The notes under the pieces: generated by a model
The model's input: the letters and a program-made list of their open reading frames with translations, nothing else
What the model was told of the DNA's origin: nothing
The model's database searches: none
NCBI GenBank assembly: GCA_037447605.1
Contig: CM074810.1
Location: 2,824,880 to 2,888,879, forward strand
From: Zygnema circumcarinatum SAG 698-1b
Lineage: Eukaryota > Plantae > Zygnematophyceae
Length of the DNA: 64,000 nt
Direction: 5' to 3'
Made by a program: the position numbers and the translations under genes
In this document: positions 27,295 through 48,436 of the stretch, in pieces
Numbering within the stretch: the first letter of the stretch is position 1
How the letters are laid out: each line of letters starts with the position of its first letter

Positions 27295-28068
27295 GCTTGT
27301 ATCTCAGCGATCACACCCACCTCCAATGCACACACCGGAAGGAAGGAATGAAAACTGAAAAGAAAAGACACCGAGAAATGAAGTAAGAGGAGAAAGCCCC
27401 ACCGGCTCAAAACTCCTTAAAATAGATAAGAAGGGTTACACACAGAAATTCAGCCCTCAGGCGATTCCTACTGCTCTGCCCTACACTCCTATCTACTGCT
27501 GCCCATACAGCAGGCCTCTACACTCAGCACCACAAGCCGAGATGCAAGGTTCTAAGGGTAACTAGCACTATGCACTAAGCAAACTAAATACTAGCCGCTG
27601 AAGCACCTCCACGTTCCACCGCGTGCCACCGCGTTCCACCTCCATGTCGTCGAGGTCGCTCCGCGCCTTCTGGAGTTCGCTCCGCGCCGCGCGGGAGCTC
27701 AGCTCGAGAGGCCGCCATGGGGAGGGGAGTGTCCGTACCGAAACTCCCCTCCGAAAAGCTCCTCCGTCGCTCCGAAGCTTCCGCGCTCCTTCGCGCCTCC
27801 AATAATCCGTACTAAGCTAACTCATAGCCGCGCGACCTATCGTCGCGCGCCACGTGTCTACACAACACTTATAAAACTAAGCGGACTCCATTGGTGGCGC
27901 GGCCTATCGCCGCCCGTCACGTGTCCTATTCAAACCCGAACGTCTTCCGACTCAGAACAGCGCTCTACCGCACTGTTCAGACTGTGACCGTATCTACCAA
28001 GGACCGCCGACACTAGCTAAGGACCGTAAAGTGTACTACGCTGTCCTATACCCCTATTGTACACTACA

Positions 28069-30660
28069 GAATGTTTGAGGGCAAAACAATCCTAACTCCC
28101 AACAATTTCCAAGGCACTCGCGGGTAAGTAGTGTCCCAACCTGCTTTGTTGCCACTTGAGCGGTTCTCCTTCCAGCAATCCTCTTCTGACCGTTGCTCCC
28201 GCTTTTTCATCCTCCGCGAGTTTGTTGATGTTTATTTGGGCTTTGATAGCGGATATACGACTTTATAAAAGACGGATCTACTCATCTGCTAAGGTCTCCT
28301 TTCGCTGGTTCCTGTCAGGCACATGGCATTGGACTACGCACGAAAGGGGTTGCTCACAGCCAGTGCCGACGTGTACGCCCTCGGCCTCATCATTTTGCAG
28401 CTATTCACGGGCGAATACAAGATAAAGAAAATCCATGACCTCCTCGAGGGCTGTTGGAGAAGGCGACAGCTGTCTTCATGGCGAGGCTGGACCCGCGGGG
28501 AGGGGCGTGGGGGCGCGACCACACAGAGGCAGTTGTCCACGTGGCGCTGCACTGCGTGGAGGAGGACAGGGCGGCTCGCCCGAGTCTTGAAAACGATGTT
28601 GTGCCTCGCTTGCAGAGGGCAGCGGAGAATGCAAAGAAGGAAAATCAACCGGATCCAATGGCGTCGTCCAGTTGCCGTGTATCTAATGCCATTTCCGAGA
28701 AAAATCAGGTAACCATCCCTCTCTCCCTCTCTACCTCCCTCCCTCCGTCACGTATTTCCTCATTTATATCCCACTCCTTTCATCCTTCCTCCTTTCATTT
28801 CCAACTCCTCGTCTCTCGCCCTCCCCCCCTCCCCTCTCCCCCCCTCCCCCCTCCCCTCCCAGCCTCGCCAGTTTCGGTCTATCATTATGAGGGCAATCAA
28901 AGTTGCAGAGAAATGCAATCAGAGCACTCCGTACCGAGTCATGTTTGCTTACAGGATTTCAGCAGACCTTGCAAAAATACAAGCTGACTTGAACACCTTC
29001 CAGGTGTCATTTCTGGTGGTGAGAGAAGCGAAGAGAGGCGGTCAACCACCTTCTCCGAGCCCAAAAACCGATCAACGAACGGAGGATGAAGACGAGGAGG
29101 ACAAAGATGTTCGATGGCTTGGTGAAGAAGCGCTGAAAGATCCTGATGTTGAGGTGCGTTCCGGGGTGGGCTTGGAGAATCGTTGTGATGGCATGTTGTT
29201 TGTTTCCCGGATGGCTTTGAAAGCTTATGCACGCGCAGATTCACCTATCGCTGTGGGTAATTGACTTGTCTGCCAGGATAAAGGCTTTTCGTATGTTGAT
29301 TGAGGAGAGATTTGAAACGTCGCCCAGTGAAGAAATTGTCTTAGAATGCGTAAAGAAATTGTCAGAACCCGAGTCTGTGGACCCTAAGTTTTTGCCTGTA
29401 TCCGTTTACTCAAGCATTTCCGACAATTTTGACTTGTGACTCCCCTCCTTGCCTTGACTCAGGTGGCAACCCTTAAAGACGGTGAGGCAGAATTCTTCTT
29501 AGGTCTGCGCTACGATTTCGGATATGGAGTCCCAAAGGACATTAAAAAGGCCGTTCAGTTTTACATGTGCGCTGCAGAGAATGGCCATCCTGAGGCCCAG
29601 TGCTGTTTAGGTCTGTGCTACGCGAATGGGGATGGAGTCCCCAAGGACATGGAAAAGGCCGTCCAGTTCTATATGCGCGCTGCGGAGAATGGTTATTCTC
29701 TGGCCCAGTACAATTTAGGTGTGAGCTACGAGATAGGGAATGGAGTCCCCAAGGACATGGATAAGGCCGTTCAGTTATATTTGCGCGCTGCAGAGAATGG
29801 TTATTCTCTTGCCCAGTACAATTTAGGTGTGTGCTACGCGCATGGAAATGTAGTCCCGAAGGACATGAAAAAGGCCATTCAGTTTTATATGCGTGCTGCA
29901 GAGAATGGCAATCCTCTAGCCCAGAATAATTTAGGTGTGTGCTACAACAACGGGGATGGAGTCCCCAAGGACATGGAAAAGGCTGTTCAGTTTTATATGC
30001 GCGCTGCAGAGAATGGCAGTCCTGAGGCCCAGTCCAATTTAGGCAAGTGCTACGAGGATGGAAACGGAGTTCCCAAGGACACGGAAACGGAGTTTCCAAG
30101 GACATAGAACAGGCCGTGCAGTTATATGTGAGCGCTGCAAAGAATGGCAGTCCTATGGCGCAGTATAATTTAGGGCGGCTGTACATGACCGGTAGTGGTG
30201 TTACAAAAGACATGAATCGCGCAGTAGAGTTGCTTCAAAAGGCGGCGGATCAAGGAGTTGCAAACGCACAATTGCAGTTGGGCAAGATTTTTGTCGACAG
30301 GAACGAAATCATTCAAAAGGACATGGAACGAGCAGTGAAAATGCTCTCAAAAGCGGCAGACCAATCCCATGTTGAGGCTGCAAATATGTTGAGGATACTA
30401 ACACGGGGGACAGGGTGTAGTGTTCAGTAGTATTGAATGAAGAGGTGGGTAAGTTAGTGAGAGAGACAAGGCTCAAAATGACAGCTCAGGGGTTCAATGT
30501 CGCTCAGTTTAACATGGAAGTATGCTTTTTAAATGAACTAGGCTTAACGAGAAACGTAGGAATGGTGAGAGATGATCTGCAGAGGGCAGGGGGTGAAGGC
30601 CACTTGAAGGCGGAGTCCACTCTGGCGTTGATCGATAACCCCTTTTGGAGAAATGGACTA
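28069..30660 (+). pseudogene. Paralog 1: kinase C-lobe, partial MCAfunc-like helical domain and about 8 Sel1-like repeats; disrupted by the LTR nest, indels and stops
   Basis: Exon MFEGKTILTPNNFQGTRG|gtaagt, then cag|HMALDYARKGLLTASADVYALGLIILQLFTG and VALHCVEEDRAARP...EKNQ|gtaacc (28708). Acceptor at 28862 is in frame with IKVAEKCNQSTPYRVMFAYRISADLAKIQ. Repeats AQYNLGVCYxxGxGVPKDMxKAVQFYMRAAENG span 29480-30400. Confidence 0.85.
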
Positions 30661-31216
30661 TTGTTCCTTTTGAACTCTTCTTTTGTCTACTTCTGTTTTT
30701 GGCACTCCAAACACAGCACGTAATTCACCTCGAGCGGAGTCAGTCTTTCAGTGAATGTGAATGTTCGATGCAAAGCGTGTCTGAGAGGCTTTGGAAGCCT
30801 AAAGCCTAAAGGTTCGGATTGGTAAGATTTTCCTACAAGAAAAGCCGAAGTATAAGATAATAACGACCTAAGATTCCAAGTGCGTAATTATCTGAGTCAA
30901 CATCTGTCCATAACTTTTCGGGCAGCAGTCGATCTCACTCTGCTCCTCCCTTCGAAAAAATAAAGGGGAGTGGCTTTCTATGCTGTCGGCCGTAGTACTT
31001 GAGTTAACGATAGCTACTTTAGGCTCACAAAAGTGGGTCAAAATTTAATATTTAAAGTGCCCAAAATAATTTCCAATGGAATCCCCTTAAGTCACACATA
31101 CCAGAGACAAAAAAGGGAAAGAAGAAAAGGAAAGGGGAATCGGCAAAAGGGGGGGAGAGAAACAAAAAAAAAACGCAACAATGAACCCCTTTACCTTGTT
31201 TAGCTCTCCCTCCCTG

Positions 31217-31280
<64 letters not shown>

Positions 31281-31325
31281 CCTACTTCAGTACGGCGCTC
31301 CTCCACTGCCACCTCCTCCCTCTCT

Positions 31326-32130
31326 TCAGGAAGTCCCACTGATGTTGAATGCCTGCAGCAGGCTCTGTGCAGCCTGTAACTGATCCGCAGTTCCGTTCCG
31401 TTCTGTTCCGTTCCGTTCCGTTCCGTAAGTCCCAACCGTCCGTTCAACTGAACCGTCCTGCACCTCATGGAGCTTCCCTCTCGCCCCCGAAATGTTCCGA
31501 ATTTGTGCGATATTTGCTCCCGCCTTTCCTATGATTGAACCCACTGAAGCTACCGCAACCTGAACATTGATAGTAGAGAGAGAGAGACCCCTCAGACCGG
31601 CGATAGGGAGGAGGAGGCCCTCGGCAGAGGGAGGGGGCCCTCCCGCACTCTCACTATCATGCCAATTCCCTCCCGCTCCCACCTGCCCATATACCGTACA
31701 AGCAGTCTGCGGGAAATTCGGAGTCGAAAAGTAGCTCTCTCCTCCTCCGCCTCCCACTACCACTGCGTTCTGCCTCCCTCCCACTCTCGCTGCTTTGTGT
31801 TCCTCTCTCGGAGGGTTCGCTCGCAGTCATTTTGAGACCTGCTGAAGGGTGATTCTTGCAGCATTTGGACCTCCCATGACCTGCATAACTTCATCGCTTT
31901 CTAGGGGGCATTCAGGAATTGCTCTTTGGGGAGAATGCGGATATTTGCGAGAGAAGTTTTTCTCATTTCTGAGATAATAGAGCCTCCCTTTGCAAGAGGG
32001 CATTCGATTTGGTTCGACGGAACGAAAAAGTTTTCCTGTTCAAGGAGGAGGGATTGGATGCGGTAGAGGGCGGGCTTCTTGGGCAGAGGGGAATTGGAAC
32101 CCCGGAATATGGGAGGGAAGAGAGGAGGAA

Positions 32131-32161
<31 letters not shown>

Positions 32162-32990
32162 AGAGAGATAGGGCGAGAGAGGGAACAAACAGCAAGAGAG
32201 CTGGGTTACTGAGTGCATTCGAAAGAATGAAACTTTGAACTTCCGGCCTGCATTAGCAATTATCACTGCCGCCCTCTTCCCCGCTCTCGTCTACTCCCGC
32301 CCACCCTCTGCCCCTTTCTCCCTCTTTTCTCCCATACCATCCACTTCCCCCATTCCCCCCGTCCCTCCCCCTCCCCAACTTCACCTCCCCCTCCCTCCCC
32401 TCCCCTTCCCCTCCCCTTCCCCTCCCTTCCCCTCTCTCTCTCCCCCCATCCCCTCCCCTTCCCCAGCTTCTCGTCTCCCTCCCTTCCCTCCTCCCCTCCA
32501 CCTTCCCGTCTTCCTGGCTCTCTCCCTCCCTCCCTCCCCCCTCCCTCCCTCACCTCAGTTCCCGAAAGTATAACCACACACTCCTCTCCGTCCGCACAGC
32601 ACCTGCGATTTTGATCCTTGACCAGTCTCCTCCCGCACCTGCTTCATACTCGACCCCCCCTTTCCTATCAGACTCCCGATCTTCCCTCCTTACACAAAAT
32701 ACGGAACACCACTTGGTAGGAGAGAAGAGAGACGAGAGAGAAGAAGGGGCCCAAATGTGCCACGTGTTGCCCCGGGATAGGCTGCCAGGAGGCCACAGGT
32801 GACGTGGCGCTTCCTGGTAGGCTCTGGAAGGTGGGCCCGGCCACATGGGCATGGGGATGGGTGATGGGGAGATGGGGCATGCCGCCATGGGAGGCATCCA
32901 TGGAGGGGAAGAGGGAGGAGGGGGCATGGGGGGGGGCATTAGGGGATGGCCGTTAGGGCGAGCACCACGGCGGCCACCTCGCCACTCACC
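31326..32990 (-). pseudogene. Degenerate KH-domain RNA-binding protein (HEN4/PEPPER/FLK-like)
   Basis: KGGSIISEMRKTSLANIRILPKEQ, DEVMQV...ARITLQQVS and VQVAVASVGSIIGKAGANIAQIRNISGAR...GTADQLQAAQSLLQAF. It has frameshifts, a stop and microsatellite insertions. The upper boundary is uncertain. Confidence 0.75.
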
Positions 32991-33959
32991 TGCCAGAGAG
33001 GGAGAGGGAGGGGGAGAGGAGGGAGGTCAGAGGGAGGGAGAGAGAGGGAGAGGGAGGGAGAGGGAGAGAGAGAGTGGCCGGGGGAGAGAGCGGGGAGAGA
33101 GAGGGAGAGGGAGGGGGAGTGGAGGCAGGTCAGAGGGAGAGAGAGAGTGGGCGCGGGCGGGGGGGGAGGAGAGGGGGAAGAGGAGTGGGGGGGGGTCAAA
33201 GAGAGAGAGAGAGAGAGTGGGGGCCGGGGGAGAGAGCGGGAGAGGGAGAGGGTGAGGGAGGGGGAGTGGGGAAGAGGTCAGAGAGCGACAGGGGGCGAGG
33301 GGGGAGAGGGAGATACAGGCGGAGTGAGGGGGTGAGAGAGAGAGAGAGAGCGCGGGCGAGGGGCAGAGGGGGATGGAGGGGGAGAGACTAGCTCAGAAAG
33401 AGAGCGGGCGGAAGGGAGAGGAGGAGAGGGAGGGAGTGGGGGAGAGGGTAGAAAGAGAGACAGAGTGGGGGGCGCCGGGGGGGGGGGGGGGGAGAGAGAG
33501 AGAGAGAAATGAGAAAAATATGAGAGGTAGGCAGGGAGCGAAGATAAGAAGGGGTGAGTTTTGGTGGGTTTGACTTTATACAAAAGAATCTTCATGTTTT
33601 AGACTTTTAATTTAAAATACTTTATATCAACCTGTAAAGATCTATTCAGTTATCGAATGGGCCCGAGAACAATATTTCAAATACGGTAACGATTATCAAA
33701 TACTAGTGAGTAAAGTAAACATTCATCTTTTCACGTTAGGACGCACTAGTTTTGACGAGCAAGAAAAATATCATATTTTCCGTCAACTTGGGCACTCAAC
33801 AACAAATAATTAAACGAGTATGAGAAAAAAAATAAGATCTTCTTCTCATTATACCCAATAAATATAAGATTAGCTCTCTGCTGACAGCAGAAAAAAATGT
33901 AGGTACACTAGCGAGATTAATTTGGGTAAAAGAAAATAATTTAAAAGAAATCAAAGAAA

Positions 33960-34425
33960 TTTACTTACACGGAGGAGAACGAGTTGAAATAGGAGAAATT
34001 AAAAAGGTTGCAGTAATTGATCTTATTTTTCTTATTGACGAATTTGATAAAACTTCACAGGTTCAACGAGGTGATCCTCTTTATGCTCGTTTTGAATTTG
34101 GAACAAAACAAAAAAGTTGTAGATAATTATTCAGGAGAGGATGTACCTTATAATCTTTCTGAGGTTATGTTTACTTGTACTTCTAGTTATGATTTGCCTT
34201 CGCCTCTTTTAGACCGAATGAAATTATTAATCTTTCTTTTCCTGATACAGAAATTGAAAATTTTTATCTTGCCAGAGATTACCTAGTTCCGGGGGCACAG
34301 CAAAAATATGCTCTAAAAAAAGAAGAAATAGAATTTGAAGATGAAGCTTTGAAAAACATCATTAAGCATTATACAAGAGATGCTAGTGTGCGAGAGTTGG
34401 ACTCTAAAATTCAGTTGATTTTCCA
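33960..34425 (+). pseudogene. lon: Degraded, intronless, AT-rich Lon protease AAA+ fragment
   Basis: Across frames: LIDEFDK (Walker B), QRGDP, PYNLSEVMFTCTS, LPSPLLDRMK (Arg finger), LARDYLVP and FEDEALKNIIKHYTRDASVRELDSKI. Confidence 0.75.
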
Positions 34426-34870
34426 TGAGGGGAGGGAGGACTTGGGGACGCCACCCGGGGGGAGGGAGGGAGGGAGGGAGGGAGGGAGGGAGGGAGGGGA
34501 GGGAGGGAGCAAGGCAGAAGAACGAGAAGAGGATGGAGACGAAGGCGTGGAGAGGGAGAGGGGGGAAATAGAATTAGAGAAGGGGGAGAGATAGTGAGAA
34601 GGAGAGAAAAGGTGAGCGATGAACAAAAGTGAAAGAAAAAGAACACGGAGGGAAGGGAGGGCGAGCGGGAAAGCTCACAGATCTCAGAGCGAAGGGAAAG
34701 AGGAAGGCGGAAGAACGAGCAGAGGGTGGGGACGATGGGGATGGCGTGGAGTGGGAGAGGGTGGAAAGGGAAGTAGAGAAGGGAGGGAGAGAGAGAGAGA
34801 GAAAACGAGAGAGATGGACAGAGGTGGGATAACAGGAGGGAGGAAAGGGAGGGCGGGCAAGGGAACTCAC

Positions 34871-35138
34871 ATATCTCCAAGTCCATGGTCAGCCACGGAG
34901 ATGCCGTCATGGAGCAGCAGTCGAACAGCCCCGTCTGCCATGGAATGCGCGCTGCAGTCAGCGCTCCCCTCTCCTCCTCCTCCCCTTCTCTCCCTTCTCT
35001 CCCTTCTCTCCCTTCTCTCCCTTCTCTCCCTTCTCTCCCTTCTCTCCCTTCTCCAGCTACTCCATCTCTCCCACGTAGGAGCTTCTTGTCCTCCGACTCC
35101 AACAGGGCCATGGCTTCCGAATTCTCTTGCTTCTCCAT
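34871..35138 (-). pseudogene. PLAC8/CNR-like gene copy B, exon 1 only
   Basis: MEKQENSEAMALL...[27 protein letters not shown] then a gtgagt donor. Paralogous to 45380-45600; no downstream exons found. Confidence 0.75.
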
Positions 35139-35649
35139 GACGATTTCTCTTTCTCCATCTCTCTCCCACTCGCTTTTTGACTCTTTCTCTCTCTGTGGCC
35201 TTCTTGCTTGCGGCCTACTACTAAAAGCTACCGAGTGTGTCCATCTTAAACCCGAATCCTGACCTTCAACCCTAGCCCTTGTGACGGAAATGACATTATT
35301 CACACTTAATGCATACACACACAACACATGGTTCCATTGGATCAACACAAAAACACTCTTTATTTACGAGAGGCCTCCTTACAATTCACTTCATCCTTCT
35401 TTCTCTCTTCCTCTATTTCTCTGCTTTTACGCAACACTTCTATTCTACTCACTGTCTACGCTTCCAGAACATTCCTCCTTGAATCCTCCTTCCTGAAGCT
35501 CATACACTTGCGACGCTTCACCTGACACTTTTCTTCCTCCTCCGGCCGCGGTCCCTTCTCATCAGAACAATCTTCGTGCATCATCCGTACACCAACCCGT
35601 ACTGTACATCAGCCCGAACAACGTCCGTACAACCCGCAGGATCATCATA

Positions 35650-35790
35650 TATCACAACTCTAACCCTTACCCCTATGCCCTACATACTATACCCTAAACC
35701 TGAACCCTAACCCTATCCGTTATCCAAAACCTAAACCCTAAACCCTTACCCCTACAACCTGCATCCTAAACCCTTACCCCTACACCCTAT
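35650..35790. repeat. Degenerate telomere-like (CCCTAA/CCCTAAA) tract just 3' of paralog 2
   Basis: aaccctt, ccctaaacc and cctaaaccc units; the equivalent tract is at 45720-45945. Confidence 0.65.
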
Positions 35791-36636
35791 TCAGCCTCAA
35801 CATCGCATGCTTCACTGGCCTCTCGCCCTGTCGTACCACTCAGCAGCCCTCCTCCCATCCTTAGGAACCCCTCGTCCATGTTCGTAACAATATCCCATCG
35901 AGAGATGAGATTCAGCATGGCCGTGCTCCGCCGCCCTCTCGTACCACTCGACAGCCCTCCTCTCATCCTTGGAAACCCCTCGTCCATTGTAGTAACACTC
36001 TCCCAACATGTATTCAGCCTCAGCATGGCCTTGCTCCGCTGCCATCTTGTACGACTCGAAAGCTTTCCCCTTATCCTCACGAACCCCACGTCCCTTTTCG
36101 TAACACACTCCCAACTTGTATGCAGCCGCAGCATGGCCATGCTCCGCCGCCCTCTTGTACCACTCAAGAGCCCTCTTCTAATCCTCAAGAACCCCTTTTT
36201 CGTGTCCATAGAAGTAACACATTCCCAACTCGTATTCAGCCTTAGCATGGCCTTGCTCTGCCGCTTTTGTAAACATTTCCACTGCCTGAACCATGTCCTG
36301 TTTAATAAATTCGTTGCTCTTTCTGAAAATCTCTCCATCAGCAAATATTTCGCCCAACTGACACTGGGCTTCTGCATGTCCTTGATTTGCCGCTTTCTGA
36401 AGCAGCTCCACGGCTAGTGGAATGTCGTCAAGGACTCCCAAGCCCTGCATGTAACACGATGCCAACTCAGCTTGAGCGTCTTCCAAACCCTCATCGGCTG
36501 CCCTCTCTAGCAGCTCAACAGCCTTTACTAGGTCTTTTTGCACCCCATTCCCGGTCTTGAAACACAACCCTAACTTGCACTGTGCCTTCAAATCACCCTT
36601 CTCTGCAGCACGTGTGTAAATCTGAACGGCCTGTTC

Positions 36637-37562
36637 TATTGAAAATTAAGGCCCGGTCCCTCTCACTACTCTCACTCTCTGACATGCTTGCAATGTCTGA
36701 ATCACGACAACCCTCAAGTGCACACACTGAAAATCAAATGATCCAATCAAGCAAACATCGAAAGAGAATAAGTAAGGAGAAAGCTCCTCGGCCTCAAAAC
36801 TCCTTAATAAAGAAATGAAGAGAAACAAGCATTAACGTCAAGCCCTCAGGCTTCCACTTATGCTCTGACTAACTCCCCTACTTCCTGCTGCCCATACAGC
36901 CAGGCAACTGCACTCGGCATCACGAGCCAAGCTACAGCTGAATTAAGTTGAACTCTCAGGTTAATTAACTCCTAATCAACTCCTACTTAAATACTAAGCG
37001 CTGCACTCCTCCACGTTCTACGGGCACGCCGCCGCGCGCCACCGCGCTCCACCGCACAGCGCACCTCCATGTCGCTGGTGATGCTCCACGTCTCCGAAGC
37101 TCGCCCCGCACCGCGCTGGAACTCACCCTCAGGGTCGCCATGGCCAGGAGGGAGAAGGTCCGTACAGTTTACTCCTTCCAAAGGCGCACCGACCTTCTCG
37201 AAGCTTCGCATCCACGCGCGCGCTTCTCCAGCGCCTCTGGTCGTCCGCACACCCATGCATCTCGTACGCTCCGGACATTTCGTACGGTCGTCCACTAAAG
37301 CAATAAGCAATACAAAGCTGACCGCGCAGCCTATCGCTGCGCGCCACGTGTTCAACCTATGCTTACCAGTTCTAAGTAGACTCCTGTGGTGGCGCGACCT
37401 ATCACCGCCCTCCACGTGTCCTACTCAGACTTCCCGTGTTCCCACTACGAACAGCGCCCTAGCGCCCTGTTCAGACTGTGACCAAATCTCCTAAAGACCG
37501 CAGACAAAGGCTAAGGACCATACAGCGTACAATTCTAGGCTATACCCCTATTGTACCCAACA
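36637..37562 (-). mobile_element. Solo LTR (E-related family) inserted in a Sel1 exon
   Basis: TSD TGTTC at 36632-36636 and 37563-37567, one end mutated (TA instead of TG). Similar to the element E LTR and to 1-413; the Sel1 reading frame is continuous across the site. Confidence 0.9.
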
Positions 37563-39735
37563 TGTTCCATGTTCTTGAGAACTCCTCTTCCGTTCTCGTA
37601 GCACAGACCTAAACGGAAAAGTGCGCCCAAATGTCCCTGATTCGCCGCATTCCTGTAAAAAGTCGCTGGCTGCTCGAAATCCGGCCAAAATCCACGCATC
37701 CCCTCCTCACATTGTACCCCGAAGAGGTAGGACGAATCCCCTTGATCTCCACTTTCTACTACCAAAGAATTTCCCTCACCCCTAATATCAATTTTCCCAG
37801 AATTCGGTTGATCGTCGACTACATTGCCTGCCACTTTGGAAGCAAGAAGTTTCATAACCGCTTGAATGTAGTGCTCCTCTTCTGATTGCTTGTCGGATAC
37901 AGCGCGCCCCATGTCCGCCTTCACCTCTTCCATGAACTTTCCGATCTTCACAAGAACATGCCATGCATAATGGATTTGTTGATAATAAGTGAGCAATACC
38001 TTGACATAATGCATGGTTATAGGCTATTTATGCGCACAAACATGACAAAAATCCATGACGGCATTCAATGCATATGGAATGTCAATCACACTCGGATGTA
38101 CGTGGAGTTCAAAGCCCAATCTCACTAAACTAAGTCCACCCCCTTGAGAAAGAGCTGCTCCCACCTCCTGCTGCGTGACCTCCCTCTCCTCCAGAAGGCG
38201 GCTCACAAGCGCGTCCACCGACTCCGGCTTGTCCACCGCCGCCCCCCCCAACAGCGCCGCATTCTGCGCCCTCTCCTCCTCCCCCGCCCTCCACACGCGG
38301 TCCATCTCCTTCCGCTGCTCTCTGCTCTCTGCTCTCTGCTCCTCCCTACTCAGCTCCCGCGGCAGCAGGAAGTCCTGCTCGCACTGCGAAATGCAGAAAT
38401 GGATGTCCTTTATGTCCTCGGAGATCTGGTCGTGGAAGAGCCGGCGGTAGAGCGCGGTCCGGTTGCAGCGCGCGGCCACTTCTGTGGCGGAGTGCACGTG
38501 CTGCAGCACCTCCCGCAGGCCCTTCTCTTCCGGCAGGCGGCCCCTCTCCCTCTCCCTCTCCCTCTCCCTCTCCCTCTCCCTCTCCCTCTCCCTCTCCCTC
38601 TCCGCCATGCGCCCCTCCAGGAGGAAGGAGAGCCGCTCCACGCGCCGACAAAGGACCCCGCCCATTTTCTTGTGTGACGTCACGTTCTCCCACGCGCGCC
38701 GCAGGGCGCCTACCGCCTGGAGAATCGAAATCGCCGTCTCCATCTGTGGAAAAAGGAAGTGGTGAGGAGAAGGGAATGAGAGAGGGGGAGGAGGAGGGGG
38801 AGGGGGAGGGGGAGGGGGAGAGGGGAGGGAGAGGGGAGAGGGGAGAGGGAGGGGGAGAGGGAGGGGGAAGGGGGAGGGGGAGGGGGAGGGGAGAGGGGAG
38901 AGGGAGGGGGAGAGAAGAGGGGGAAGGGGGAGGGGGAGGGGGGGAGGGGGAGAGGGGAGAGGGGAGAGGGGAGAGGGAGCGGGGAGGGGGGAGGGGGAGG
39001 GGGAGGGGAAGAGTGGGGGGATGGGGGAAGGGGAATGAGAGAAGGGGGAGGGGGAGCTAGAGGGGAGAGGGGAGGAGAGGAGTGGGATGTAGAAAGAGGA
39101 AAAAGGTGTCGGAGGGATGGGAGGTAGAGAGAGTGAGAGAGGGGATGGTTACCTGGTTTTCCTTTGAAATAGAATCAGATACACGGCGGGACGGCGCCGC
39201 TAGATCCGGTTGATTTGCCTTCTTTGCATTCTCCGCTGCCCATTGCAGCCGAGGCAGAACATTGCTCTCAAGTTTCGGCCGAGCCGCCCTGTCCTCCTCC
39301 ATGCAGTGCAGCGCCACGTGGACAACTGCCTCTGTGTGGTCGCGCCCCCACGCCCCTCCCCGCGGGTCCAGCCTCGCCATAAAGACAGCTGTCGCCTTCT
39401 CCAACTCGCGCTCCGGTGGAGCCGCGTCAACCTCGAGGAGTCCATGGATGTTCTGATCTTGGACCACCGCTGAATAGTGTAACGACGAGGTCGGGTACTG
39501 GGTACGCGCAGGAGCTGGTGAGCGAGGGGTGACGCTGGGGCGTCGCCTGGAAACCAAAGGAGCGGCAGGGGACGTGAGAGGGAGGGTGGCCACGGGAGTG
39601 GCACGACAGGTTCAGGCGGGGGACCGAACCCCAGGGGCCAACGGAGGGCGCTCGCCAACACTCACCGCGCCAGCGGGCGGAGGGACAGGACGGCGCGGAA
39701 GCGGCCTCCCTCCCATCCAGAGTGGGACAGCGCCC

Positions 39736-40163
39736 TCACGTGAGTCTGCTCCTTATACTGAGGCAAAAAAGGCCGCCAGGAGACTTGGACGGGAGAGAGT
39801 CCATTGAGAGCGGACGTGTGGGAGGATCTGAGGGTGCAACCCCTCCCTCCTCGTTCAAAGAAGGTCGGGCCAGATCAGTGACGGTTAGTGAGATCGAGGC
39901 AGCATCAATGGACGAGATGAAGGACCGGAAAGAGTCGGGCAGCCCGCCCAAGAGATTACAGATGATCTCATCATCATGCACTACGCAATCAATGCTGCGA
40001 AGCCGTCTAGCAAAAGATTTGACGCGGTCAGTATAAGTTAGCATGGTTTCAGAGGATTCCTTTACGCAGTTAGGGAAGGCACGCCGCAAACAGAGTTTGT
40101 GAGACCACTTCCGAGGTTCGTATGCATTGATCAGAAGAGTCCAAGCGTCGTGGGAGCTGGTGG
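39736..40163 (-). pseudogene. Copia gag (UBN2-like) remnant inside the kinase gene
   Basis: SSHDAWTLLINAY and ETMLTYTDRVKSFARRLRSIDCVVHDDEIICNLLGGLPDSF. Confidence 0.7.
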
Positions 40164-40574
40164 TGTAACAAACCGGCCTCCAGCAAGGTTTGATCTCAGG
40201 ACCTCCCGGTATTCACCTAAGTGCTTTACCATTAAAAGGCAACCGCGGATGTAAGTACTAGGTCATACACTCCATGTATACCGTTCGTTACATTCCTCCC
40301 CACCTAAACCGTGCTCGTCCTCGAGCACCATGCGGGTTTTCACGAGACTTGGCTGTTCCAGCTCAACCAATCTATACCATGCTCAGAGATCACGGTGTTT
40401 TTAGGGTGGATTGCAAATACCAGTCCTTAGGCTCTGATACCAATGTAACAAACCACTGCCTGTAGCAGGGTTCGAACTCAGGACCTCCTGGTATTCACCT
40501 AAGTGCTTTACCATTAAAAGGCAACCGCGAATGTAAGTACTAGGTCATACACTCCATGTATACCGTTCGTTACA
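40164..40574 (-). mobile_element. TRIM (411 bp): LTRs 40444-40574 and 40164-40292, PBS 40431-40442, PPT 40293-40301; LTRs contain a tRNA-like sequence
   Basis: Two about 130-bp direct repeats with TG...CA ends, tRNA-iMet PBS, PPT ggggaggaa and a 151-bp non-coding interior. No matching TSD (ggtgg versus gctac). Confidence 0.9.
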
Positions 40575-40579
40575 GCTAC

Positions 40580-40919
40580 CTACACTCGCGAAGCACTGCT
40601 CCGAGTGCAGTAGCAGTAGGCATGAGCCTCCCCATAAAGGCTCGGGTGATTCTGGATGCTAAGCTTCTCCCCGTGGAGCAGCTTATGTAGCTCGCCGGGC
40701 CGTGACCCGGTCACGGCCGCCAGCATGCACAGGCTGTACAGACCCCTACGTGGGCTTGTGTCCGCCATGGCATTCTCAGTGTGCCTTAGTGCGCCCCTGT
40801 GCAGATGTCTCTGCACATGGTGGCAAGGCTCAGTGGGAGGGGAGCGCACTCGCTCTGACGCCGCCGCCTTCGCGCGAGTTTTCGAAACGCGGCTTTCCCG
40901 GTGTGCGCGTAAACCTTTG
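40580..40919 (-). pseudogene. Possible tyrosine-recombinase remnant
   Basis: RRGLYSLCMLAAVTGSRPGELHKL resembles the box I motif TGxRxxEL; the rest is cut by a gap and the TRIM. Confidence 0.4.
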
Positions 40920-41616
40920 NNNNNNNNNNCGGCTTCAAGTCGCAGTGCATGATACCTTTCTAATGCATGAACAGAAGAGTGGTCGCCATCTCGTATGATA
41001 TCCGGACGCGGTCCGCCCAACCAAGGGGGGGGTACTTGTTAGCAGGACCGCTCAGGCGGTCGTGGAGGCTCCCTCCGCTCATCAGCTCGCTCACAAAGCA
41101 ACGCGCTTCGGGGCTCCATCCCATGAACTGCACAATGTGGGGATTGTTGGGTACCCCGCGTAGAGCCGCCACCTCCTCCTCGAACCCCTCCGGGGGGGCG
41201 CTCTCATGGAGCCTCTTAACCGCCACAGGGGTGCCGTACAGCATGCCTTTGTAGACCAATCCATAGCGTCCTTTTCCGAGCAGGTTTGTGTCGGAGAAGT
41301 TGTCGGTGATCTCCACCATAAGCTTTTCCGGGAAGAGGAATGCATCAGGCATTTCCATTCCGGCTTTTCTTTCTTTGTCTTTCACTCTCTCTCTTTCTTT
41401 CTTTCTTTCTCTCTCCCAGTCTCTGCCTCTCTTTTTCTCGTTCTCTCTCTCTCTTTCTCGTTCTCTTTCTCTTTCTCTCTCTCACTCTTTCCCTCTCTCT
41501 CTGTGACCTTCCTGCTTGCGCCTTACTGCTAAAAGCCTCCGAGCGGGTCTATCTTGACTACCTGCAAAAACGCCGCCGGTCTTGGAAGAAATCGAAACTT
41601 GTTGGCGAATGCATGC

Positions 41617-41940
41617 GACTCTTTTGGAGAATGCGATTCGCCTGCATGCCATGCCATGCCATTGCTGTTCATAGGCGACTCCACGCGACGCTTTTGGAGA
41701 ATGCGATTTGCCTTCCCTGCATGCCATGCCATGCCATGCCATGCCACGGTGTTTACTGGCGACTCCATGCGACGCTTTTGGAGAACGCGATTGGCCTTCC
41801 CTGCATGCCATGCCATGCCATGCCATGCCACGGTGTTTACTGGCGACTCCATGCGACGCTTTTGGAGAATGCGATTGGCCTTCCCTGCATGCAATGCCAT
41901 GCCATGCAGAGTGTTCATCGGCGACTCCATGCGACGCTTT
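41617..41940. repeat. Minisatellite of about 80-84 bp units (about 4 copies) with internal (CATGC)n
   Basis: cgactccatgcgacgcttttggagaatgcgattggccttccctgcatgccatgcc... repeated near 41676, 41760, 41844 and 41922. Confidence 0.85.
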
Positions 41941-42927
41941 CGACTCCCGTGGGCTTCCCCTCGCATCCCCGCCAATGGTTGGCACTCTCGCGTTGGCTCT
42001 TGCCGGAAGCAACTGCCCCATTGGTTCCGCGAGCGGCCACCGTCCGCGGACTCGACCGCGTGCCATGATGCCATCCCGTCCGCCGCAGCGGCAGCGCGTG
42101 CGCGTACCGCTCGCTCTCGCGCCCACGGGCCACGTGGCAGCAACGCATTGACTGGCGAGGCTGCAGCGTGCTGTTACCGCTCGCTCTCGCTCCCGTGGTG
42201 ACACTCTCAAGACCTACCGTCAAACTCACGCGCTTTGACAACATCAAGACAGAGAATTCAAATAAAAGTCGGAAGAATCAAACCAATGGCAGCACGCCAC
42301 GTGTCCTCATAACACTTGGCAACCCGTGGTTGGCTGAAGTTCCGTTGTTATCCACCTTTATATATCTCAGAAACTCAGAAACTGAGATGAACACCCATGG
42401 ATCAAAATACTACAACGAAAAGAAAAACAACATTCTTGTCCACTTTCATTCTCAAACAGAAACTCTTTTAATTGACAAGCAGCGAGTTTCTTGATTCATC
42501 CGTCGTCCGTACAGCATACAATAGAATACAGCTAGAAGTGATCCGTTCCACCTTCTTCCTTTACTACTTCTAAAAAACAGAGAGAAAACAAAACACCAGC
42601 GACCTCTTCGTACAGATCCTGTTCAACATCACAAAAGGCCGACTTTTTGCAAAAATACGTATGCGCTCAAGCCCAATTTCTTACTATGGTACAGAGCCCT
42701 CCCCTCCCTCGTTCTCCCTCTCCCTCCTCCCCTCCCTTCTCCACTCCTCCCATCCTCACTCCTCAAAATAAAACATTCGCTCCTTCAAACATACACACAC
42801 TCTAACTCCCATCATGTTAAATCCTACCTCTCCGCCCCTCCCTTCCCTTTCTCTCCCTCCCTAATAGCACACCCTCCCTCCTCCCCTCCCCGCCCCTCTC
42901 CCTTCCCACTCTCCCTCTCTCTCCCCC

Positions 42928-45600
42928 TTACGCCATAGCCTGCTCCGCGGGAGCCATGACCTGCACGCTCTGCGAGGCGGCCATGGCTGCCGGGCCGGGC
43001 AGGGTCCCAGTTCTGCGGCGGAGCTCCCGCGCCTCCTGACAGAGCGCGCAATTGTGGCAGAAGAAGGGAAGGAAGAAGTCGCAGAGGGCCTCGAAAGACC
43101 CCGCCTTCACTCCGCAGCACCCCCCCACCATACAGAGGCAGAGCTCCGCATCACCCTGCAGAGGGTAAGTAGATGCAAACACATCAGCATTGGGAATCTC
43201 TCTCTTCATCTTTCTCTAACTCTCTCTCTCTCTCCCCTTCTAATTTTCTACGGGACTCTTCGTCTCTCGTTCAAGGAGAGTCGGAACATTCAATCTTTCG
43301 ATATCAATCTCTGTCCATCTAATTTCTTCGTGGTTCAGCGCCTTGCACTACTCTGAACTCTCCGGTTCAATCCAATTCCACAAAAGTCTCAGTTATCCCA
43401 GGAACCGAAAGTCCACAAAAAAGCCCAATTCCCATTTCCTCAACAAACGGATTTCTCCGAAAAGACTCTCCCACAAAACCATCCCAAAAAGCTCCGAATG
43501 CAACTTTGCACGACCCGCCTGCAGGCTCCCTCGAACTCACCCCAAAACGACCCAAATCCCACCTTTAATGAACCACCTGCAAACCTTTCTCAAACCCACC
43601 CCCAAAATATCCGAATCCCATCTTTCAAAACCCACCTGCAGGCCGTACTTGCGGCGAAGCTGCGTGCGGGTGAAAGGAGGGGGAGGAAAGAAAGGGGGCG
43701 AACACATTGACCCGGGCTGCACCTGCAATCACTTGCATGCACAGAGCATGCTGGTTTAGGTCGCAGAGGCAAGTCTAACCCACTGGGCCACCTGCCAAAA
43801 GCAATGGCCGCTGCGAAAAAAAGCCTGATCACTCATCTCTCTAACTTCATAGAGGAGAAATCGCTACTTTCTTTAAAACAATTGTGTTCAAATCGTGAAT
43901 GACCAACTCCCTTTCATCATTATGCTGGTCTATGTTGCAGGAGAGCTCCAACACCAATTCATGATAGAAATACAACACAAAGTCGCCAATGAACGGACAA
44001 AGGACAGCCAAGCAGCAGATCATGTTCAGTTCAGTTCAACCAAAACAAAACAACCTTTTTCAACTCCTTTCTCAGGGAGTGAGAAAGTCATACTGGGGGC
44101 TGTGTGCATCCTCCAAAGTTGAATAAGTTTCGAGGTGGGGGATTGTTGGTGGTCGCAGTCACTGCGCTGCATGCTATAAGTCATGTTCCCCGATTCCCCA
44201 TTCCCTCCTGGTATTCGTTTTTGATTCTCGCCCTTCACCGCTGCCTGCAATGTCAATGCAACACAACTTTGCATGTAAGTGCGAGGCAAAATCATCCCCA
44301 ACATGTGTCACAAGAAGTAGGCAGCTCTGCATAGCACATAGGCATTACAATGTAAATATTTGTGTTCTGCTGTTATGATTCTGCTATCTTAAAGGTCATA
44401 AGTTTGTATTTCCTCAATATCACATTCTAATGACACGTCTGTCTCTGACTCGTTCGATCTTAACTTACGATGAAGCAAATGAAGTAGTTACCATTCGTAG
44501 ACTTCGGAAGATCCACTAACTCTGTGTGCGAAACAGATGTTGTTGATGTAACCTGAAGATCGGGCATCTAAACCTACGATTCAGCAATGTTATCTTCTCA
44601 CACTAAAGTCAAGTAACAACGGACACATTTTCTGCCCATTCTAGATCATCAACGATGTGCTCCATTCCATCAAAACATTGGTTTCCTTTCGTGGTCCATG
44701 TAGGCTTCGTTTCCCATCCAACTATAATTGTACTTCAAAAATACACGAGTTCATTTTGATGGGGAACCGGCCATTGATGCGTCTGTTGAGCTATGAATAA
44801 TGGCCACAACCGATATTCGCTGGACCCTCTCCAGATTACAGCTACCCCCAAAACCGGCCTCTACCACTTGCTTGTTGTCGCTCTCACTTTCGAGAGGGAG
44901 GGAGACGGAGAGGGAGAGGGAGAGGGAGAGGGAGAGGGAGAGGGAGAGGGAGAGGGAGAGGGAGAGGGAGAGGGAGAGGGAGAGGGAGAGGGAGAGGGAG
45001 AGGGAGAGGGAGGAGGGAGAGGGAGAGGGAGAGAGGGAGAGGGAGAGGGAGAGGGAGAGGGAGAGGGAGAGGGAGAGGGAGAGGGAGAGGGAGAGGGAGA
45101 GGGAGAGGGAGAGAGGGAGAGGGAGAGGGAGAGGGAGAGGAGGGAGAGGGAGAGGGAGAGGAGAGGGAGAGGGAGAGGGAGAGGGAGAGGAGAGCGAGGG
45201 GAGGAAGGTAGCAAGGCAGACGAACGAAATGAGGGTGGGGACGAAGGCGTGAAGAGGGAGCGGAGGGAAGGGAATAAGAGAAGGGAGAGTTTGTGTGTGA
45301 GAGAGAGAAAAAGTGAGCGATGGCCAGAAGTGAGAGAACAAGAACACAGAGAGAAGGGAGGGTGAGCGGGCGAACTCACATATCTCCATCCGTGGACTGC
45401 CACGGAGATGCCGCCATGGAGCAGCAGTCGAACAGCCCCGTCTGCCATGGAACGCGCGCTGACGGCAGCGCTCTCCTCTCCTCCTCCTCTCCCTTCTCTC
45501 TCTCCTCTCCCTTCTCCCCCGTCTCCATCTCTCCCACGGAGAGCTTCTTGTCCTCCGAATTCAGCAGGGCCATGGCTTCCGAACACTCGGGCTTCTCCAT
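42928..45600 (-). pseudogene. PLAC8/CNR8-like gene copy A (exons 45380-45600, about 43638-43725 and 42928-43163), probably disrupted
   Basis: [25 protein letters not shown] and GDAELCLCMVGGCC...LCDFFLPFFCHNCALCQEARELRRR. It has a 2-bp deletion versus copy B just before the first donor. An intact middle exon was not found. Confidence 0.8.
44891..45190. repeat. (GAGAGG)n microsatellite in a PLAC8 intron; a similar tract is at 54810-54995
   Basis: Long near-perfect hexamer run. Confidence 0.95.
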
Positions 45601-45627
45601 GACAATTTCTTTTGCTCCCTGTCTCTT

Positions 45628-45668
<41 letters not shown>

Positions 45669-45719
45669 CTCTGGTCTCCTTGCTTGTGCCCTACTACCCA
45701 AGCTACCGAGTGCGTCTAT

Positions 45720-45945
45720 CTGAAATCCTCACCCTTACCCTAAACCCTCACCCTTACCCTTAAACCTATACCCTACACCCTATTCCCTAAACCTAAACCT
45801 AAACCTAAACCTAAACCTAAACCTAAACCCTAACCCTAACCCTTATCCAAAACCTAAACCCTGAACCGTTACCCCTACACCCTGCAACCTACACCCTAAA
45901 CACTGAACACTAAACCATAAACCCTACACCCTGACCCTTAAACTA
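45720..45945. repeat. Degenerate telomere-like (CCTAAA/CCCTAA) tract just 3' of paralog 3
   Basis: (aaacct)n run at about 45790-45830 plus ccctaa variants. Confidence 0.75.
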
Positions 45946-48436
45946 ACCAGAAACCCAAAGGCTGTTTTTGTTGGCCCAACTTAACGTGTCCAACTTGTAG
46001 TCAGCCCGGAAGCTGCCGTTCTTCGACGCCATCTTGTACCACTGAAAAGCCCTCTTCTTATCCTTGGGAACCCCTCGTCCATCGTAGTAACACTCTCCCA
46101 ACTCGAATGCAGCCTCAGCATGGCCGTGCTTCGCCGCCCTCTCGTACCACTTAACAGCCCTCCTCTTATCCATAGGAACCCCTTCTCCATTGTAGTAACA
46201 CACTCCCAACGTGTATTCAGCCTCAACATGGCCTTGCTTCGCCGGCCTCTCGTACCACTCAAATGCCCTCCCCTTATCCATAGGAACCCCTTTTCCATGC
46301 ATGTAAGAAAATCCCAACATGCATTCAGCCTCAGCATGGCCTTGCTCCCCCGCCCTCTTGTACCACTGAAAAGCCCTCCTCTCATCCTTAGGAACCCCTC
46401 GTCCATGGAAGTAACACTGTCCCACCTCGTATTCGGCCACAACATGGCCTTGATTCGCCGCCCTCTCGTACCACTCAAAAGCCCTCTTCTCATCCTTAGG
46501 AATGCCCTTTTGGGGTCCATAGGAGTAACACACTCCCAACTCGTATTGAGCCTTAGCATGGCCTTGCTCTGCTGCTTTTGTAAACATTTCCAGTGCTTGT
46601 ACCATGTCCATTGCAATATTTCCGTTACTCTTCCGGAATATCTCTCCATCAGCAAACATCTCGCCCAACTGAAACTGGGCTTCTGCATGTCCTTGCTTTT
46701 TCGCTTCCAAGTACAGTATCATGGCCCAGAGAATGTCTTGACGGACTCCCAAGCCCTGCATGTAACACGATGCCAACTCAACTTTAGCGTCATCCAAACC
46801 TTGACCGGCTGCCCTCTCCAGCAGCTCAACAGCCTTTACTAGGTCTTTTTGCACCCCATTCCCGGTCTTGAAACACAACCCTAATTTGCACTGTGCCTTC
46901 AAATCGCCTTTCTCTGCAGCACGTGTGTAAATCTGAACGGCCTGTTCCATGTTCTTGACAACTCCTCTTCCGTTCTCGTAGCACAGACCTAAACGGAAAA
47001 GTGCTCCCAAATGCCCCTGATTCGCCGCATTCCTGTAAAAAGTCACCGCCCGCTCGAAATCCGGCGCTAATCCACGTATCCCCTCCTCACATTGTACCCC
47101 CAAGAGATAGGACGAATTCCCTTCATCTCCACTTTCCACGACTAAAGAATTTTCCTCACCCCTACTTTCAATTCTCCTAAAAAACCGTTCATCCCCTCTA
47201 CCCATACTTGCGGAATTCTCTGCAGGTGTTCTTTTCAGTTCAATAGAGCTGATGCTCCTCAAATCACTGATTTCCTTCGAGGACCGCCTCGAGCTCTTTG
47301 CCCGTTCTATGAGGCTACGAACACAAAAATTGTCAACAAGACGAAGTTCTCCAGTTCTGGGGTCAGTTTCAATACTTTCATTTGTTAATGGGTCGGTTCG
47401 GTGCCCTCCTTGAAACCACTCTTGAATGCATTTTCTGTCATATGTATGCCCGGAATCCAACATGACAGGATCCTCCATAATGTGGTAACATATGGGGCAG
47501 ATGAGCTCAGGAGAAGCGTTATCAGCGTCTGCCTCGTCGACTAAATTGCCTGTCACTTTGGAAGCAAGAAGTCCAATAATCACTTGAATGTAATGCTCCT
47601 CTTCTGATTGCTTGTCGGATACAACGCCCTCCATGTCTGCCTTCACCTCCTCGATGAAACTTCCGATCTAGCCAAGGACATGCCATGCATAATGGGTGAG
47701 CTGATAATTAGTAAGCGATACCTCGACATAATTCATGGCCATAGGCCAATTATGGGAAAAAGCTTGACAAAAATCCATGACTGCATGCAGTGCATATGGA
47801 ATGTCAATCACACTCGAATGCAAATGGAGTTCAAAATCAATTCTCACTAAACTAAGACAACCCACCAACGCAAAACAAGTCAACCCCCGCAAGAAAGAGC
47901 TGCTCCCACCTCCTGCTGCGTGACCTCCCTCTCCTCCAGAAGGCGGCTCACAAGCGCGTCCACCGACTCCGGCTTGTCCACCGCCGCCCCCCTCAACAGC
48001 GCCGCATTCTGCGCCCTCTCCTCCTCCCCCGCCCTCCACACGCGGTCCATCTCCTTCCGCTGCTCTCTGCTCTCTGCTCTCTGCTCCTCCCTACTCAGCT
48101 CCCGCGGCAGCAGGAAGCCCTGCTCACACTGCAAAATGCAGAAATGAATGTCCTTTATGTCTTCGGAGACCTGGTCGTGGAAGAGCAGGCGTAGAGCGAG
48201 CTACGTTTGCAGCGCGCGGACACTTCTGTGGCGGAGTGCACGTGCTGCAGCAGGTCCGTTAGGCCCTTCTCTTCCGGCAGCAGGCGGCCCCTCTCCGCCA
48301 TGCGCCCCTCCAGGAGGGAGGAGAGCCGCTCCACGCGCCCGCAGAGGAGGGCGCCCATTTCCTTGTGTGACTGCACGTTGTCCCACGCGCGCCGCAGAGC
48401 CACCACCGCCTGGAGAATTGTACTCGCCGTCTCCAT
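45943..48436 (-). CDS. Paralog 3: MCAfunc/MLKL-like helical domain, U-box and 10 Sel1-like repeats; one apparent 1-bp frameshift near 48190
   Basis: METASTILQAVVALRRAW...LCGRVERLSSLLE and EEEHYIQVIIGLL. U-box SPELICPICYHIMEDPVMLDSGHTYDRKCIQEWFQGGHRTDPLTNE. Ten repeats of the type HAEAAFELGECYYDGRGVPKDKKRAFQWYKMA. Probable intron about 47670-47900. Confidence 0.85.

Follow-up and report, generated by a model that had tools for sequence, protein, structure and literature searches.

Three gene copies in the window

We analysed a stretch of 64,000 nucleotides from the alga Zygnema circumcarinatum SAG 698-1b (contig CM074810.1 of assembly GCA_037447605.1, positions 2,824,880 to 2,888,879), referred to here as the window, for which an initial annotation had proposed a gene family that joins a kinase, a helical domain, a U-box and Sel1 repeats. 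Three related copies lie in the window: P1 on the plus strand (28069-30723), and P2 (41355-35787) and P3 (48436-45943) on the minus strand. No further copy of the kinase, of the helical exon or of the U-box/Sel1 exon was found when the whole 64 kb was searched. Our results suggest, with a probability of about 0.68, that these are three decayed, transposon-riddled paralogues of a lineage-specific modular family, whose ancestor most likely carried all four domains. The pieces on which this reading is built are listed below; kinase residues are numbered on P0013, a protein of 769 amino acids encoded by an uninterrupted kinase-Sel1 open reading frame (ORF) in a transcript-like 3.9-kb Logan contig of SRR8128904.

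27560-28068, long terminal repeat (LTR) copy that truncates the 5′ side of P1, 99.4% identical to 19246-19754 and 20532-21040
28215-28708, plus, remnant of the P1 kinase C-lobe that runs from the activation segment into the tail ...SEKNQ
28709-28862, plus, P1 putative intron, GT...AG, CT-rich, with the AG at 28861-62
28863-29063, plus, P1 helical remnant, helices 3-4 only, 31% identical to P2 in the three-copy alignment
29436-30430, plus, P1 Sel1 array (Pfam Sel1 E 1e-61, 6 stretches in the first ORF), with no U-box ahead
35815-36636, minus, remaining P2 Sel1 repeats, which align to P3, with an in-frame TAG at 36180-36178
36637-37564, minus, transposon/LTR-like insertion of 0.9 kb in the first P2 Sel1 repeat
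37565-37945, minus, start of P2 exon 2 by alignment to P3: linker and first Sel1 repeat, U-box absent
38165-38743, minus, P2 helical exon, beginning with ATG and carrying an (RE)n insertion
38744-39152, minus, P2 putative intron, wholly CT-rich, with GT at 39152 and CAG directly before the ATG at 38743
39153-39455, minus, P2 kinase tail, ending in ...SKENQ before the GT at 39152 and matching P0013 residues 284-352
39456-40919, minus, P2 non-kinase insert, in place of kinase residues ~213-283 of P0013
40920-40929, assembly gap, flush against the last P2 kinase codon (..KP), HCDLKP ending at 40930
40930-41355, minus, P2 kinase from N-lobe to catalytic loop, with GKGRYG, VAVK and HCDLKP read in the sequence and matches in Pfam and the PDB
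45943-47667, minus, P3 exon 2, an uninterrupted ORF of 567 codons: linker, U-box, 10 Sel1 repeats and stop
47668-47909, minus, P3 putative intron 2, GT...AG, phase 0, conserved with P2 38164-37946 (83% identical)
47910-48436, minus, P3 helical exon, with the ATG at 48436

Outside the helical domain, the identity of each domain is plain. The N-lobe of the P2 kinase matches the Pfam families PK_Tyr_Ser-Thr and Pkinase (E 9e-12) and, because its closest solved relatives in a PDB search are BAK1, IRAK1, IRAK4 and LysM receptor kinases, it is of the RLK/Pelle type, as the initial annotation had stated. The glycine-rich loop, the beta3 lysine and the catalytic loop that define RLK/Pelle (IRAK) kinases are all found, in a domain that is broken in both of its bearers, P1 and P2. 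The ATG at 41355 stands immediately before the kinase core and there is no ectodomain, so the kinase is of the cytoplasmic type. Its N-lobe is 48% identical to residues 86-212 of P0013. The match breaks at residue 212 and resumes only at 39455, equivalent to residue 284, after non-kinase DNA, and the kinase is therefore not continuous across the gap at 40920-40929; about 70 residues, from the DFG region to helix F, are missing. No match to a kinase was obtained by tblastn in any frame of the 1.46 kb between 40919 and 39456, at E values up to 10. This insert holds a TRIM-like element and, at 39736-40089, a fragment of copia gag (Pfam E 4e-9). For the unsized gap to hide the missing residues, the transposon block would have to follow them directly.

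Two side observations concern this part of P2. Its catalytic loop (40945-40930) reads HCDLKP and is thus of the non-RD kind, where the related P0013 has HRDLKP; the HCD may be a mere CpG mutation in a pseudogene. Within the insert, two direct repeats of about 100 nt with a tRNA-like look were seen by eye near 40540 and 40240 (40164-40574), and contain ..GGTAAAGCACTTAGGTGAATACC.GGAGGTCCTGAG.TCGAACC...

The C-lobe remnant of P1 matches residues 247-353 of P0013 and positions 166-208 of Pfam PK_Tyr_Ser-Thr (E 0.004), and the kinase tails of P1 and P2 are 82% identical in protein, with a ratio of nonsynonymous to synonymous substitution (Ka/Ks) of 0.46. In P3, no kinase was found in the 280 nt before the assembly gap at 48715-48724 nor beyond that gap. 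Upstream of the P3 ATG there is a CT-rich tract of about 75 nt homologous to P2, followed by unique sequence, a G-rich run and the gap.

The U-box (PF04564) is found only in P3 (Pfam E 6e-13, residues 46-95 of exon 2), being deleted from P2 and absent from P1. Sel1 repeats (PF08238) occupy 10 stretches in P3 (E 1e-94) and at least 6 in P1, and Pfam finds them in P2 as well. The succession of helical domain, U-box and ten Sel1 repeats originally described for P3 is thus correct. The C-terminal array of P3 gave no Pfam match to Arm repeats, consisting of Sel1 instead, and a search for homologous proteins with the U-box part of P3 returned nothing. P3 would be a nearly intact, kinase-less gene for a putative U-box/Sel1 ligase.

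Splice signals, decay and duplication

The kinase and the helical domain would stand in separate exons in P1 and P2. As originally annotated, the P2 kinase exon ending in ...KENQ is followed by a GT at 39152, and an AG lies before 38743, in phase 0. The P2 donor, CAG/GTAACC after ...SKENQ, recurs in P1 after ...SEKNQ, so that the context CAG/GTAACCATCCC is common to the two copies. The acceptors, CAG/ATG in P2 and CAG/CCT in P1, each close a CT-rich tract, and all sites are in phase 0. The corresponding proposal for P1 was right in part: the same donor stands at 28709, in frame with a homologous helical segment, but the acceptor is not homologous to that of P2, because P1 lacks helices 1-2.

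These signals, together with the absence of a conserved stop codon 3′ of the donor in P1 and P2, give reasonable indirect support to a putative junction by which the kinase and helical exons would have formed one transcription unit in the ancestor. It could be argued instead that two genes lie side by side, one for the kinase and one for the helical/U-box/Sel1 unit, with the ATG of the helical exon as the true start and the donor unused. The helical exon does start exactly at an ATG in P2 and P3, P3 has unique upstream sequence of its own and no kinase, and domains of the UND/MLKL_N type are normally N-terminal. The spacer between kinase tail and helical exon, 154 nt in P1 and 409 nt in P2, speaks against two genes, since it is purely CT-rich, ends in a consensus acceptor and therefore leaves no room for a terminator and a promoter; so do the lack of a conserved stop after the kinase tail and the donor and phase, which are conserved between P1 and P2 at 16% divergence. 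We regard the two-gene arrangement as unlikely, and a single ancestral transcription unit as the better reading.

Sequencing-run data decide nothing on splicing. In a run index whose run kinds are guessed or unknown, the share of P3 exon 2 covered is 0.77 for a run guessed to be RNA, and 0.94-0.96 for runs of unknown kind.

The lesions announced for all three copies are indeed there, in the form of stop codons, frameshifts, deletions and transposon or LTR insertions, and P1 and P2 are unmistakable pseudogenes. P2, clearly a pseudogene, has an in-frame TAG at 40962-40960, within the kinase part at 40930-41355, and in the alignment to P3 it lacks about 118 codons, an in-frame deletion that has removed the U-box. 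The insertion in its first Sel1 repeat resembles 27245-27738, 27828-28068 and 19514-19755 in a self-comparison of the window, and its insertion point is flanked by a GAAC duplication, as seen by comparison with P3. The decay of P2 would thus have comprised loss of the kinase core, loss of the U-box, entry of a transposon into a Sel1 repeat and two stop codons. In P1, the truncating LTR adjoins a copia gag/pol ORF at 26044-27294; the activation segment of the kinase remnant is interrupted by TAA at 28266 and 28290, and the reading frame shifts near 28455; neither helices 1-2 nor a U-box is present; and the Sel1 array is shifted in frame near 30090, with further repeats in a second ORF. LTR truncation, stops and frameshifts would account for the decay of this copy.

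P3 differs from the other two in having a single lesion, in that its helical exon, compared with that of P2, is short of 1 nt near 48191 (CTACCGCC in P2 versus CTACGCC in P3), and is otherwise open. Could P3 be an intact and expressed gene, with the frameshift an assembly error? Its one 1-nt lesion, the clean 567-codon exon 2 and the intact splice signals are what such a gene would show, the assembly is gappy, and the share of exon 2 covered by the run guessed to be RNA points the same way. Against this, the site of the deletion is not a long homopolymer, the run kinds are uncertain, most runs that cover the exon contain the intron too, and the Ka/Ks values are near neutral. An intact P3 is therefore improbable in our judgement, and we keep to the reading of three decayed copies.

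The history of the locus can be read in part from the alignments. Positions 44966-48510 and 34458-38831 are 71-89% identical in the self-comparison, a downstream PLAC8-like gene included, and P2 and P3 are the products of a tandem duplication of about 10 kb, which would have taken that PLAC8 gene along. The boundary of the duplication would lie about 75-90 nt 5′ of the helical-exon ATG, inside the putative kinase-helical intron and, because the breakpoint falls there, P3 would have been born without the kinase exons. P1 appears to be an inverted copy, older than or as old as the P2/P3 pair; 28453-28860 and 39405-38989 are 84% identical in inverted orientation in the same self-comparison, the kinase tail of P1 being a copy of that of P2. 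The birth-and-death picture put forward in the initial annotation holds, given these lesions and the duplication structure.

Divergence between P2 and P3 appears close to neutral, as is expected when at least one partner is long dead. Ka/Ks is 0.61 in the first half of the helical exon and 0.45 in the second half, 0.74 in the linker and 0.82 in the Sel1 array, and the synonymous distance (dS) of about 0.21 is near the intron distance of 0.19; positive selection is not indicated by the Ka/Ks values of this pair. In the second half of the helical exon (47910-48188 in P3 versus 38165-38443 in P2) dS is only 0.05, and the 47 residues with which the shared Sel1 part begins (in P2 from 36636) are identical. 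Since dS is about 0.21 elsewhere, these tracts suggest gene conversion between the pseudogene P2 and its neighbour P3.

From the parts preserved in the three copies, we infer an ancestor in which a cytoplasmic RLK/Pelle kinase would have been followed by a divergent helical domain of the MLKL_N/MCAfunc/PUB-N-terminal kind, a U-box and Sel1 repeats, the first two being joined by splicing. Such a protein would be a kinase-fused U-box E3 ubiquitin ligase, with the Sel1 repeats in the place that ARM repeats occupy in plant U-box (PUB) ligases, and the Sel1 array would bind substrates or partners. The order kinase, helical domain, U-box (in some copies) and Sel1 repeats had been proposed before. 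Each of these domains is present, but the order is a superposition of copies: no copy is intact, and kinase, helical domain, U-box and Sel1 repeats never occur together in one of them.

Several points weigh against our reading of the locus. Kinase and U-box never share a copy, so the four-domain ancestor is reconstructed. An ATG at the head of the helical exon, and a P3 that lacks the kinase, would also fit two separate genes. For the P3 helical exon together with intron 2, the share covered is 0.91-0.97 in runs of unknown kind, so intron 2 is present in the contigs of those runs, and just 0.36 in the run guessed to be RNA. Lastly, the draft assembly is gappy, with 13 gaps in the 64 kb, and some of the lesions may be its errors.

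Probable kinship of the helical domain

The helical domain is the part whose identity is least direct. The initial annotation had likened it to MCAfunc and to the MLKL bundle, and the profile comparison that it named for this claim failed. Five helical pieces searched against Pfam at E values up to 10 matched neither MCAfunc nor MLKL_N, and the sole related match was to DUF7792, in the right register but below threshold (E 0.062); the UND/MCAfunc-type families PF19584, PF25055 and PF25368 gave no match at threshold. With phmmer, the P2 helical exon found nothing among 1.84 billion cluster representatives beyond repeat-centred matches: there were nine, and in 8 of the 9 the best stretch lay on the (RE)n repeat. 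Two of these matches, P0001 and P0002, were read individually and rejected as low-complexity or repeat-derived junk. A profile built from the three-copy helical alignment had no match in the PDB; this alignment is too poorly conserved to serve as a search query. A helical piece searched against metagenomes likewise gave no match. Modelling with AlphaFold in two runs (single sequence, and an alignment of four rows) gave an all-helical chain with a predicted local distance difference test score (pLDDT) of 60-61, in which the helices of the P2 domain are predicted at about 2-18, 24-60, 73-93 and 104-165 (pLDDT 60). Foldseek against PDB, AFDB-SwissProt and the Atlas, together with VIA-align, returned only generic helical matches, and these fold searches of low-confidence models gave no structural match to MLKL. 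Neither the HMM searches nor the fold searches gave a significant match for this domain.

Language-model features give a different answer. In the Atlas, the P2 domain is placed beside the MCAfunc, MLKL_N, DUF7792, PUB10_N and RPW8 clusters (0.92, with 190 of 256 features shared), and all 10 of its best family matches agree on that clan. The first 82 amino acids of P3, which are without the RE repeat, fall with MLKL_N, DUF7792, MCAfunc and PUB10_N (0.94, 188 shared features). These Atlas clusters are of streptophytes and, like the plant-type kinase, accord with a streptophyte, probably zygnematophyte, alga as the source. Position agrees with this placement: in plant U-box ligases the N-terminal domain sits directly before the U-box (PMC8049495), and the helical domain of P3 has the same position. 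The claim of likeness to the MCAfunc/MLKL clan therefore stands on the language-model features of two paralogues and finds no match at threshold among hidden Markov models (HMMs).

A sceptical reader may prefer to take this segment for a linker, a charged coiled coil of generic type that is not specifically akin to MLKL_N, MCAfunc or UND. The HMMER searches of Pfam, the PDB and the 1.84 billion proteins, with no match other than those centred on (RE)n, and the generic helical hairpins returned for models of pLDDT about 60, are what a linker would give. A linker would scarcely explain why two paralogue pieces, one of them RE-free, have only MLKL_N, MCAfunc, DUF7792 and PUB10_N as top families, with 188-190 features shared, nor why the domain immediately precedes a U-box, the position of the N-terminal domain in PUBs (PMC8049495). 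We consider the linker doubtful and conclude from the language-model features that the helical domain is probably akin to the MLKL_N/MCAfunc/PUB-N-terminal clan. An executioner function for this domain is pure conjecture.

Related architectures, possible roles and neighbouring genes

No paper describing proteins with kinase, UND-like domain, U-box and Sel1 repeats was found in the literature, and the gene family reads, from its domain composition, as a possible variant of plant U-box ligases with Sel1 instead of ARM repeats. The MCAfunc domain is specific to streptophytes, and its ancestral partners are U-box and Arm (PMC8049495). With the type I PUB ligases (PMC8049495; e.g. AtPUB13), P3 shares a helical N-terminus that begins at the initiator methionine, a U-box and an alpha-solenoid array, and the PUB10_N and PUB2_N clusters are among the Atlas neighbours of its helical domain. 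It differs from them in that the solenoid is made of Sel1 and not ARM repeats, in an N-terminal domain that falls below the Pfam threshold for MCAfunc, and in the kinase that stands upstream in some copies (P1 and P2).

A kinase placed ahead of a U-box has a precedent in plants, namely the class IV PUBs (AtPUB32-35, 50-55), in which the order is UspA, kinase and U-box. These share with the present family an RLK/Pelle cytoplasmic kinase N-terminal of a U-box within one family, and the kinase-tail motif ...LD..(A/G)G.W...RP.L found here is one that we take to be of the class IV PUB kinase type. In the window, however, the family has an intervening helical domain and, behind the U-box, Sel1 repeats; UspA is not seen, and kinase and U-box never occur in one copy.

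The likeness to animal and plant MLKL consists in a kinase fold together with a helical domain whose language-model features fall beside MLKL_N. The architecture is not that of MLKL, which has a four-helix bundle, a brace and a pseudokinase; here the kinase comes first and PF22215 gave no match. The surviving GxGxxG, VAVK and HCD look catalytic, as judged from these motifs, and not like a pseudokinase.

When P3 exon 2 was used as query, Sel1 proteins came back in their thousands, and among these there were many kinase-Sel1 fusions of bacterial or early-diverging fungal origin. The kinase-Sel1 fusions, which include those of Glomeromycotina and Mortierellomycota, bacterial Ser/Thr kinase-Sel1 proteins and P0013, resemble our family in having a kinase followed by a long Sel1 array and, in the fungi, in their transposon-rich gene settings with variable copy number (PMC8647823, PMC8778642); they differ in lacking a helical domain and a U-box. 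P0013, too, is without both. It is the sole true kinase relative found, its kinase being 48% identical to that of P2 in the N-lobe and 60% around helix F, where the kinases of the other kinase-Sel1 proteins are only 25-26% identical. Because this kinase is truly related, the pairing of kinase and Sel1 is real and modular in at least one other source. An additional ORF with a TRAF/Sina zinc finger (L001 51-650) lies in the same Logan contig of SRR8128904, 130 nt upstream of P0013 and in a different frame. It could belong to the P0013 transcript as one more module, separated by a retained intron or a frameshift, or be a neighbouring gene. A literature search for SRR8128904 gave no paper. P0022, which combines a U-box with Sel1 repeats, was rejected as a member of the family: it has a hydrophobic leader, has no helical domain and looks bacterial.

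The initial annotation went further and saw in the cluster a module of sensor, kinase and executor. As a working unit in the window this is not upheld, since P1 and P2 are pseudogenes and P3 is without a kinase. The wider claim is that Sel1 sensor, kinase and a four-helix executor or ubiquitin ligase form an immune or cell-death module and that the cluster belongs to a working, fast-evolving receptor repertoire. Features of the helical domain resemble MLKL_N, RPW8 and MCAfunc, the region is transposon-rich and prone to duplication with copy-specific loss of domains, the catalytic loop of P2 is non-RD, and the TRAF/Sina ORF stands upstream of the related kinase-Sel1 ORF on the P0013 contig. Parallels exist in arbuscular mycorrhizal fungi, where kinase and Sel1 families are expanded in transposon-rich regions, as in Rhizophagus (PMC8647823; PMC8778642), and where 'MLKL family' proteins of Glomeromycotina carry Sel1 repeats (PMC8778642). 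Yet all three copies are broken, two of them beyond repair; Ka/Ks is below 1 and near neutral and does not point to positive selection; the models of the helical domain found only generic fold matches; and HCD could be a CpG mutation in a pseudogene. A working immune module at this locus thus seems very improbable.

A related and almost equally speculative suggestion is that intact members elsewhere are immune or cell-death receptors independent of NLRs, and that the cluster preserves the dead members of a birth-and-death repertoire whose modules are shuffled by partial duplications, the kinase-less P3 being one example. Sel1 would then sense a ligand, the non-RD RLK/Pelle kinase would signal, and the bundle, MLKL/RPW8-like, would damage membranes or dock a U-box ligase. 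We give this only a slim chance.

Under the reading of decayed paralogues, the locus consists of pseudogenes and one nearly intact, kinase-less gene, and we think that its main value is as a case of domain shuffling by partial duplication. It records gene birth and death in several forms: a duplication whose breakpoint in an intron would have stripped off the kinase, gene conversion, in-frame deletion of a domain and transposon hits. If the family is real and active elsewhere in the genome, streptophyte algae would have swapped ARM for Sel1 repeats and put a receptor-type kinase in front. This would extend the mix-and-match history of the MCAfunc/UND domain (PMC8049495) and would offer a candidate for signalling or immunity modules that predate land plants.

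The PLAC8-like gene that was duplicated alongside P3 lies on the minus strand at 45600-45380 and 43209-42928, about 340 nt 3′ of the P3 stop, and a second copy is found around 35150-34870. It has its own ATG at 45600 (MEKPECSE...), a first exon with a W..GLFDCC motif and a Cys-rich second exon; searched alone against Pfam, its pieces gave no match. A gene with an MCAfunc-like domain that stands head-to-tail with a PLAC8 gene, and is co-duplicated with it, recalls the MCA mechanosensitive channels, which combine MCAfunc and PLAC8. In the window these are two separate genes, with U-box and Sel1 repeats in between, and not a single polypeptide: the P3 ORF stops at 45943 and the PLAC8-like ATG is separate. 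Full MCA proteins are known from land plants only (PMC8049495).

Three other features were noted near the copies. Two KH-domain exons of a gene for an RNA-binding protein lie on the minus strand at 31326-32266, between P1 and P2 (Pfam KH_1 E 2e-7 and 1.5e-3). A short Lon protease-like fragment on the plus strand at 34017-34594 (Lon_lid E 3e-4), with a preceding ...PLLDRM... piece, is probably a gene fragment brought into this repeat-rich region. Just 5′ of the P2 kinase start, at 41600-41940, a unit of about 77 nt is repeated in tandem, with 81-86% identity among copies.

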